From: Zancudomyces culisetae HAW-14-8
Lineage: Eukaryota > Fungi > Kickxellomycota
Direction of reading: 5' to 3'
Length of the DNA: 64,000 nucleotides
Assembly: GCA_052426225.1 (NCBI GenBank)
Contig: JBNJNM010000006.1
Coordinates: 620,001-684,000, forward strand
How positions within the stretch are numbered: position 1 is the stretch's first letter; each line of letters starts with the position of its first letter. The position numbers and the translations under genes were made by a program. Shown one piece after another: positions 48,985-57,706 of this stretch. The notes beneath the pieces are model-generated. The model was not told the origin of the DNA. It did not search any database and was given only the letters and a program-made list of their open reading frames with translations.

Positions 48985-52024
<3,040 letters not shown>

Positions 52025-52292: not shown

Positions 52293-53608
52293 TTATTCTG
52301 GACACCTTTTTACAGATAAAACGACGGTGTAGAATATAAATTTACTAAGCAGGCTGTAATAGGCAACATGATCTTCGTGCTCATCAAGTTGAACTCTTTC
52401 TGTATAAATATCGTTTAAAAACATTGCGACTTCATCCTCATTGGACTTACGAGGTACAAAGTATGCAAGAGTTTTCAACTTTTCGATGCTAAACACCTGT
52501 GCCTGGACCAGCTTGCGGAACGTAGATTCAAAGACTCTTCTAGTTATGATGTTTATATGTGGTGTGTATAGCTGTGTTGTATTTAGATACTTTTCTAGTG
52601 TCAATGAACTATCAAATACATTTCCAATTTTCCTAATCGCATTTGTAGCTCGGTACAAGTAGTTGTATACTGGATGTGTTTCAGAATACTTTTGAATAAA
52701 TTTCACAGTGATTTGGTAATAGTACCTCTTAATTGTGGGAAGATATCCCCCGCGACTAACTTTTAGCGCATACAACAACAAGAAAAGTCGTATGGCCATT
52801 GATTTAAAAAAGATTGGTGGGTTTATCCTGTGTTGCAGCGTGAGGAGTTTCATTGTTTGTACCAGTTCGGTACAAATTCTAGTCGTGTACCGGATCGCTG
52901 TTCCTACGATGTTAATATCCAGTTCTTTGCTGATAACATAGTGGAAATTGAGTTTGATCTGCGTTACTCCAGTAAAAGTAAATGCAATGGCATCAAGACC
53001 CAACTTTAATTTTGAATCTATGTGTATGTGTTTGTTTATGCTTTCACCACTGCTAATCTTTTCTACTCTCTCTATGTCTATTATCCTCCGAAGCTGTTGA
53101 TTAATGTGTTTAACATACTCAATTACAATCTGGGGCAGCTTTCCTTGAAGTTTAGAGCTGTCTTCTTCTGAGAGCACATTAAGGTGGAACTGATGAAGAT
53201 TATCGAGCATTTCATCCACACTTTTACTGTTTTTCATAGCACTGGCAAGAGAGCTATGTCCAAAATCATTTGTATTGTTTTTTGTAAAGTACCAGTTGGA
53301 GCCCATTAAGGGAAAAATAAGGTTATTTCGCGCGGATGAAATATCTGTTTTTACATATGTTACGCTCGACGTAAAGGTAGAGTAATAGTAGAGCCTAAAG
53401 ACCGGAATCATCAGCTCTTTAATGGCAACACCATCCTGTGCATTATCATTTGCTTTTACTAGCACTTTTTTTTTTAGAAATATATTGAAGGCTGTATCTA
53501 TTTGTTTTTACAAAAAGATACGGTTGCTAGTACAAATTCTCTTCTCTTCTCTTCTTCATCCTCCTCCTTCTCCTCCTCCTCCTCCTCCTTCTCGACCTTC
53601 TTCATCTT

Positions 53609-56280: not shown

Positions 56281-56736
56281 ATGAGACTGGCTGAGGCACT
56301 AATACTTCGAGCGGATCTTGATAAGTCGATCACTGATCTTAAGAACAGAATAGTCAATAACTCTCTGGTACAAGATGGAACAAAGCCCGCTGAAGATCCT
56401 GAGAGGCTATTTACAGAGTTATACGTAAAAATACAGGAACTTGAGGATCTGATTGTTAGAATCAACTCTACGAATCTTGCTGTAAAGACAGACAGCGGTC
56501 TGAGTATAACTAGCGCAATAGCCAAGCGTGACTCATTGGAAAAATTGCACAGGATACTTGATGCGGTCTCCAGTCATGCAAACACCACAGTGAACCGATA
56601 CTCCAAGACCGAAATCTTGAATGTAGCAACAGTTGATATTGTAGCTCTTCGCAAAAAGATAGACAAATTAGCGAAGGAGAGACGTGAGATAGACGTGCAG
56701 ATCCAAGCTGCAAACTGGACTAATGAACTAGTATAA
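56281..56736 (+). CDS. DIP1984-family (bacterial-type) helical protein, 151 aa, intronless
   Basis: Family hallmarks MRLAEALILRADL, VQDGTKPAEDP..L, LIVRINSTN, AIAKRD.L, RYSKTEI and RREIDVQIQAANWTNEL. Confidence 0.88.
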   Translation: MRLAEALILRADLDKSITDLKNRIVNNSLVQDGTKPAEDPERLFTELYVKIQELEDLIVRINSTNLAVKTDSGLSITSAIAKRDSLEKLHRILDAVSSHANTTVNRYSKTEILNVATVDIVALRKKIDKLAKERREIDVQIQAANWTNELV

Positions 56737-56757
56737 TTTATATATGTATTTTTGGTA

Positions 56758-56882
56758 GCAACCAACAGCACAGTGAACAGACATTAAAATCAATTCTGAC
56801 TTTATCACACTTAATGTTAAGAATCACAAGGGCAATCTTCAAAATCAAAACGTATCACCACCTGTTGGGTGCTGTTGGTTGT
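56758..56882 (+). ncRNA. Putative structured RNA element in the 3' flank of the DIP1984-family gene
   Basis: Perfect 13-bp inverted repeat caaccaacagcac (56759-56771) / gtgctgttggttg (56869-56881), extended by aacag/ctgtt (56776-80 / 56862-66), with an inner acattaa/ttaatgt stem (56781-87 / 56811-17). Confidence 0.55.
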
Positions 56883-57706
56883 GAGGGCGGGACAGGGGAC
56901 CTTTTTTTTTGAGTTAGCTTTTGTTTTTTGTTTATGAATAGATCTTTTATCAGAAATACTCTGGACATTAATAAAGGCTTTTTACAACTCATTTTTTGTA
57001 AAATTGTGTGCTGAAGGGGGGTTTATTTTTTTGAAAAAGTGATCTATTCATTACTGCTAATGACAAAATAGTAATGGTCGAGTTTGATTAAAGGGCACTT
57101 TTAATTTTAGTTTGTGTTATTATCTATAAGATAATTACAAAGCTGGAGTAAAAATGATGTACTATAAAAGGTAAACACAATTAGCAGGGATGTTTTTGGT
57201 AAATATCTCTCGGCAGTATGGATAGATGAAGCTCAAGTTTGCGTTTTGTTTTATATAATTTGGTTCTGAGGTTTACTATGTTGTATTATTTTATTTAAAA
57301 CAGTTTCATTCTTCATCACCCTCCCTGCCCACTTTCATTATATAGAAGCAAATATTGCTCTGTCATATCTTAAACTGTTGGAAATATATTGATTTTTCAG
57401 TGATTTTTTATAGAAAATATATCGTTCGATTCACAGCTTCCTGTGATTTTTACCAATTAATTCACACCAATTCTTCTGCCTATGAATGAGCGGGGTTATC
57501 AGCAACATAACGGTTTTATATCTTCCTCATATTCGTGAAGAACACTGTTTTTCAAATCACCTTGCTATCTCAAAGATATTTAAATGAAGGTATTTGCATT
57601 TTTCAAAGTTGGTATTCAAAATAATACTTGTATCAGCCAAATATAAAAAATAATCGAGCCTACTGATGTCCTAGAGGGATTTCCAACTACAACTTTATAA
57701 AGAAAT

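Follow-up and report, generated by a model that had tools for sequence, protein, structure and literature searches.

The window analyzed here is a stretch of 64,000 nt from the gut fungus Zancudomyces culisetae HAW-14-8 (assembly GCA_052426225.1, contig JBNJNM010000006.1, positions 620,001 to 684,000 of the forward strand), and all positions given without a contig name are those of the window. An intact DIP1984/DUF6847 gene lies between MCM-family and PITH genes and is followed on the same strand by a candidate structured RNA element that spans about 56754-56898. The features are as follows.

48985-52024, MCM3-like gene, intron-split, ordinary
52293-53465, minus strand, open reading frame of 390 aa with no Pfam match
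56281-56736, plus strand, DIP1984/DUF6847 gene, intronless, 151 aa, long helical fold (PF20935, E 1.5e-48; NF038048; PDB 3KDQ)
56754-56757, plus strand, 5' G-tract and invariant GUA directly outside the helix, likely the 5' end region (G, U and A in 80/80, 79/80 and 80/80 rows)
56758-56771, plus strand, 5' strand of helix P1a (covariation z 13-21)
56772-56780, plus strand, RG internal loop, single Y-R pair (U56774/G56867), bulged G56775 and 5' strand of P1b
56781-56806, plus strand, short variable segment; bacterial copies have two pseudoknotted hairpins here, frequently with a T-loop arm
56807-56859, plus strand, YA lattice, mostly single-stranded, ending with the invariant ACC at 56857-56859
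56862-56882, plus strand, 3' strands of P1b and P1a
56883-56898, plus strand, near-invariant G-tail (GA, GGG, Y, GGG, three nt, GGGG; alignment columns 340-355 conserved in 73-82 of 82 rows)
56902-56910, plus strand, nine-T run past the tail, a possible 3' boundary seen in the sequence (T-runs are common in AT-rich intergenic DNA)

The open reading frame at 56281-56736 exceeds the curated HMM cut-off and has the fold of 3KDQ, and is a member of DIP1984/DUF6847. The sole solved relative of the protein is 3KDQ from Corynebacterium diphtheriae (four chains in the PDB entry; 37% identity, TM 0.93). Across 113 homologues R10, R23, R83, R106, R135, Q31, E38, N65, Q142 and W146 are invariant or near-invariant, and the proteins have no net basic charge (pI 5.4-8). 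Comparison with the ESCRT-III/PspA superfamily gave generic hairpin matches only, with Z of 7-8, which lies within the background for helical proteins. Members of the family are often labelled 'septicolysin' in the databases, and the gene is present in 342 plasmid records of Acinetobacter. This toxin name is apparently a mistaken annotation, since the protein is a helical one of 151 aa unlike the true pore-forming cytolysins. A 'septicolysin-like' gene of Malassezia is already a transfer candidate (10.1101/2020.01.28.923367). In the ESM Atlas, clusters from phage and Bacillota that have no Pfam family show a DIP1984-like fold (TM 0.74-0.82), and related RNAs may lie in their 3' regions. Contamination was ruled out by the presence of the gene in an independent Z. 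culisetae assembly, which has 99% identity with the window, by its MCM and PITH flanks and by fungal neighbours in other genera.

Behind this gene, an earlier note made from the window alone had described a closed stem-loop at 56758-56882. The stem starts 21 nt past the TAA and has the geometry claimed for it: a G-U pair (56758/56882), 13 perfect pairs (56759-56771/56869-56881), a small internal loop and a 5-bp stem (56776-56780/56862-56866). The range proposed for the element captures its core and falls short at both ends, where GGUA (56754-56757) and the G-rich tail (56883-56898) belong to it as well. The loop of 81 nt is indeed A/C-rich and G-poor (A34, T22, C18, G7). Said to be the strongest inverted repeat of the window, the stem is the longest perfect one with a loop of up to 200 nt, apart from one A/T homopolymer pair. 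For a 7-bp inner hairpin, also suggested, no support was seen in the homologues. Folded alone, the window sequence is unexceptional (z -1.33); the evidence for structure comes from homologues.

The regions downstream of DIP1984 homologues were compared, as the earlier note had proposed, and the same RNA was found 3' of fungal, bacterial and archaeal genes. Among fungi its frame recurs in Gongronella, Coemansia, Hesseltinella and Smittium; of 160 loci from bacteria and archaea, most have it too. The element measures about 145 nt in fungi versus 160-220 nt in bacteria and lies almost always on the strand of the gene, about 10-130 nt after the stop. When 82 non-redundant copies were aligned by sequence only, the top 14 column pairs by mutual information all fall in the closing helix P1 (z 7.5-21.5, 83-100% canonical), and RNAalifold gave nine pairs, every one with double changes. 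Conservation of G56773 and of the bulged G56775 extends to 81/82 rows, and the pair in columns 56/314 has z 7.5. The other near-invariant unpaired bases are GUA (56755-56757), YACA, GYA, YA and A in the loop, the ACC and the G-tail. In 48 held-out copies, which took no part in model building but whose alignment is fitted to the model, 98.5% of cells are paired with 166 double changes, versus 22-43% with slid partners. There are 67 G-U pairs versus 17 A-C pairs, an excess that points to RNA on the strand of the gene. Rfam 15 has no covariance model matching the element in the window, in 20 loci at the gathering score or in 12 loci at E up to 1. The comparison strongly supports the claim of a cis-encoded structured RNA kept with DIP1984 genes across bacteria and fungi. 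The RNA family is real, apparently undescribed, and tied to DIP1984 genes in bacteria, archaea and fungi.

The loop is periodic with a unit other than the one first proposed, a WATC repeat at 10 nt. ATC does start at 56789, 56804, 56823, 56835, 56844 and 56854, with ATG at 56814. The gaps between the ATC starts are 15, 19, 12, 9 and 10 nt, a trinucleotide present six times turns up in 50% of shuffles, and the homologues have a mean of 1.2 ATC in this region; the WATC repeat was discarded on gap irregularity, shuffles and spectral power at 10 nt. What recurs is the dinucleotide YA, every 6-8 nt in a register anchored on the ACC, with a spectral power of 8.65 at 7 nt, against no more than 1.1 in the null, and of only 0.81 at 10 nt. 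The 7-nt peak is reproduced in the held-out copies, and an alignment-free count back from the ACC gives YA peaks at 2, 5, 11, 18, 24, 31 and 38 nt. In the window the A of each lattice unit stands at 56807, 56813, 56819, 56826/56828, 56834, 56841, 56847 and 56854, and the YA sites lie 3, 10, 16, 23, 29/31, 38, 44 and 50 nt ahead of the A of the ACC. Four of the six ATC noted earlier belong to this lattice. The spacing is variable (6-8 nt) and looser in fungi. The idea of periodic sites for a protein oligomer fits the loop sequence in so far as YA units at about 7 nt take the place of WATC at 10 nt.

Outside the helix, 75 of 84 copies have exactly three G among the five bases that end with the G of GUA. 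The arrangement of the three varies, and no copy has four. Shuffling of columns gave 45 +/- 3.8 such copies with a maximum of 61, a comparison uncorrected for relatedness; among held-out copies the count is 29/34. The window copy has only two G in its 5' tract. These counts suggest that the 5' tract and the three tail tracts could form a G-quadruplex of three tiers at the foot of P1. One bacterial clade of 16 members (support 98) has neither the 5' tract nor the G-tail and keeps the core, which counts as one event and not many. Pairing of the 5' GGU with the ACC was rejected, as it shows no covariation and the ACC persists in the clade without the 5' tract. The tail was also considered as a Shine-Dalgarno site and rejected, as it is retained in fungi and the downstream genes lie in either orientation. 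Other matches to the G-tail in the fungal genome were dismissed as G-rich noise.

Bacterial copies have an inner domain with two covarying pseudoknots (GCCC/GGGC 34/37, GCUC/GAGC 11/11, GUCC/GGAC 4/4) and a T-loop in 33/82 copies. In the fungal copies the T-loop is absent and neither pseudoknot was seen; fungi keep the helix, the lattice and the tail without the bacterial tertiary domain.

Linkage was surveyed in 453 genomes, 151 per phylum. An adjacent RNA was found in 24 of 25 gene-bearing genomes, three of which were chosen as centres. By phylum, the gene has the RNA in the same genome and next to it in 14/14 Chloroflexota (one of these gene matches being fragmentary), 8/8 Bacillota and 2/3 Actinomycetota gene-bearing genomes. 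A few short weak RNA matches in the survey are probably noise. The family is also present in Deinococcus radiodurans. Searches with the RNA model gave a single copy per genome, in the fungus as well as in five bacteria. BLAST, the covariance model and a pattern search agree on a lone fungal copy, and the element is not a MITE, the outcome that the earlier note had named as one that would count against it. No neighbour family occurs in more than 4/104 loci or more than 3/127 adjacent genes, so the unit is the gene with its RNA. Defence-gene matches among the neighbours are scattered, with no clear defence-island signal, and no transposase or recombinase linkage was seen among them.

The RNA is also present on Streptomyces, Picosynechococcus and Enterococcus plasmids and in phage; a pattern scan of viral contigs returned one already known locus only. 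A large phage contig (L175:3590-4987) carries a stray G-tail together with two complete RNAs that lie 0.5 and 1.3 kb past the gene, with open reading frames between. Tandem RNA copies occur in L057:3478-3874, and duplicated cassettes in L251 and L257, with one RNA lacking the tail. One strong orphan RNA (L207, G141:C13:111296-111543) shares its genome with two complete cassettes. On an Acinetobacter plasmid (L227:1501-2280) a 'septicolysin' gene is followed by a weak, tail-less RNA and then, about 75 nt after the element, by a pdif-like site. In L161:1-2224 the gene-RNA cassette lies within an array of 14 tRNA genes, and tRNA genes are nearby in L136 and L072 as well.

A quick tree places 15 of 16 fungal-type proteins in one clade (SH-aLRT 94), leaves Smittium unplaced and singles out no donor. 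Three loci assigned to fungi by the tree only match the model with E 8e-12 or better as held-out sequences. The clade covers Zoopagomycota and Mucoromycota, which implies a single ancient gain followed by many losses, or else passage from fungus to fungus. The proposed co-transfer from bacteria needs recasting as an old or shared event across Kickxellomycotina and Mucorales, not one specific to this species. The fungal genome also holds two near-identical DIP1984 paralogues (L002, G000:C11:4805958-4806407; L003, C21:880360-880809), which have 49% identity to the window gene, a longer open frame, a long branch and no RNA, and have lost R83 and R135. Another paralogue of the fungal clade without RNA, L193, retains both arginines.

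In C. diphtheriae the DIP1984 gene (2033772-2033317, minus strand) is monocistronic and well expressed, and a sense 5' end at 2033300, 17 nt past its stop, is one of 51 intergenic ones, listed as 'no ORF or ncRNA found' (PMC5784534 supplements). The GG of the window element starts 18 nt past the stop and the median GUA offset is 12 nt, a fit to the C. diphtheriae 5' end by position only. Transcription may start there, or processing may leave a protected end. A role of the RNA as 5' regulator of the next gene was rejected, as the neighbours are unconserved and in C. diphtheriae clpC is transcribed from start sites of its own.

The ends of Y RNAs are closed by a long bulged stem around a big single-stranded loop, and the tRNA-like module of the bacterial forms is missing in eukaryotes. 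The element resembles the Ro60/Rsr and Y RNA system (bacterial YrlA) in having an RNA gene beside a protein gene, a long closing stem with a conserved bulge, a large single-stranded loop and a tRNA-like module in the bacterial form that is absent from eukaryotic copies. It differs in its partner, which is DUF6847 and not TROVE (no TROVE is among the recurring neighbours), in a bulge that is G in 81/82 copies and not C, in the YA lattice and G-tail, and in having neither an Rfam Y RNA match nor an RtcB-type operon (RtcB in 2/127 neighbours). Like type III toxin-antitoxin systems (ToxIN, CptIN, TenpIN), it is a mobile two-part cassette known from plasmids and phage that pairs one protein with a pseudoknotted, repeat-bearing RNA. 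Unlike those systems, its RNA is one closed downstream unit and not a set of tandem 34-57-nt repeats upstream, and DIP1984 has no nuclease fold and is not of the ToxN, CptN or TenpN family. Evenly spaced conserved bases in single-stranded RNA recall binding of the TRAP, Hfq or nucleocapsid type; here the bases are YA at about 7 nt, the protein is helical and unrelated, the lattice lies inside a helix and there is no linked attenuator. TRAP attenuation in particular, the analogy first offered, has (G/U)AG at 5 nt in a 5' leader and a beta-sheet ring, versus YA 3' of the gene and a helical protein. Like the raiA motif, skipping-rope, OLE and tmRNA/SmpB, the element is widespread, highly conserved and pseudoknotted, measures about 200 nt and frequently has a T-loop; unlike them it has no Rfam match, is strictly linked to one gene and is retained in fungi. 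ARAGORN made no tRNA or tmRNA call on the element in 10 loci. By analogy, the pair is most like Ro60/Y RNA in layout and type III toxin-antitoxin in genetics, and it falls outside both by their defining tests.

In titles and abstracts on DIP1984, DUF6847, 3KDQ and septicolysin no link to RNA was found; large candidate lists are only partly searchable. The searchable parts of the supplements of three ncRNA surveys gave no listing of the element, the headings of a fungal motif survey include no match, and a recent tRNA-mimic preprint covers other families. An earlier listing without a name, for example in large candidate lists, is possible.

Taken together, the comparative data argue that gene and RNA probably encode a two-part protein-RNA particle. 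The cassette would be self-contained, consisting of the DIP1984 gene and a same-strand structured RNA just past its stop. Besides the covariation and the linkage, the loss of R83 and R135 in the paralogues of this genome that lack the RNA, the extra 5' end in C. diphtheriae and the detached RNA copies favour the particle; the pI of the proteins, the variable YA spacing, the mere two 5' G of the window copy, the arginines kept in L193 and the scattered defence matches weigh against it. The RNA would be made with or just behind the mRNA and is likely to persist as a discrete stable species. A clamp of its ends by P1 and a G-quadruplex of one 5' and three 3' G-tracts is slightly favoured. Binding of the RNA by DIP1984 oligomers through the conserved arginines is probable; that it nucleates on the helix with the bulged G, each YA unit of 6-8 nt taking up about one subunit, has somewhat less than an even chance. 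The RNA might also template and restrain protein assembly, which would be freed or remodelled on cutting or loss of the RNA, as in a stress sensor or an addiction module, although this is doubtful. An RNA-based restraint would fit the patchy, mobile and partner-free distribution, and it is the weakest step and rather unlikely as proposed.

Three other explanations were weighed. The element could be a cis-acting 3'-UTR element, by which the protein binds its own mRNA tail and sets stability or translation while its real job lies elsewhere. The near-constant position on the same strand, about 10-130 nt past the stop, the monocistronic transcript of C. diphtheriae and the fact that a 3'-UTR is workable in bacteria and fungi alike are in its favour. 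We nevertheless consider it improbable: C. diphtheriae has a separate 5' end, RNA copies occur detached, in tandem and as orphans, and two pseudoknots, a T-loop and an end clamp appear too elaborate for mere feedback. Many invariant unpaired bases, the covarying pseudoknots, the T-loop in part of the copies and the cassette in the tRNA array would instead suit an RNA that is itself the active part (a ribozyme, a ligand sensor or a tRNA mimic), with DIP1984 as chaperone only. Fungi, however, lack the whole tertiary domain though they keep helix, lattice and tail, and neither an Rfam ribozyme or riboswitch match nor an ARAGORN call was obtained, which makes this explanation still less probable.

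A site acting as DNA (a recombination site or a single-stranded origin), a MITE, a terminator or a chance hairpin would account for the patchy distribution, the pdif-like site about 75 nt after the element on Acinetobacter plasmids and the weak z of the lone fold. The excess of G-U pairs on one strand, the pseudoknots and the T-loop contradict it, as do the single copy per genome, the lack of a transposase or recombinase link and the retention in fungal chromosomes, and it has hardly any likelihood left. The claim that the element is not a terminator is strongly supported. The protein-RNA particle remains the preferred reading.

A structured RNA common to bacteria, archaea and fungi yet absent from Rfam is rare, and it is rarer yet for eukaryotes to retain a bacterial ncRNA along with the partner gene. 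Comparative data seldom point to a natural G-quadruplex in a bacterial RNA, as the compensated three-G count would do. As the fungal copies represent a minimal core, they offer a simple binding test with a 151-aa protein and a 145-nt RNA. In its fullest and more tentative form, the proposal is a so far undescribed ribonucleoprotein shared by bacteria, archaea and early-diverging fungi. Its RNA loop, clamped by a G-quadruplex, may template a helical-protein assembly of fixed size and sense RNA damage or infection, with a reduced RNA in fungi. For the widespread DIP1984 family, known so far by a solved structure and, on many Acinetobacter plasmids, by a misleading toxin label, the element is the first concrete lead to a function.
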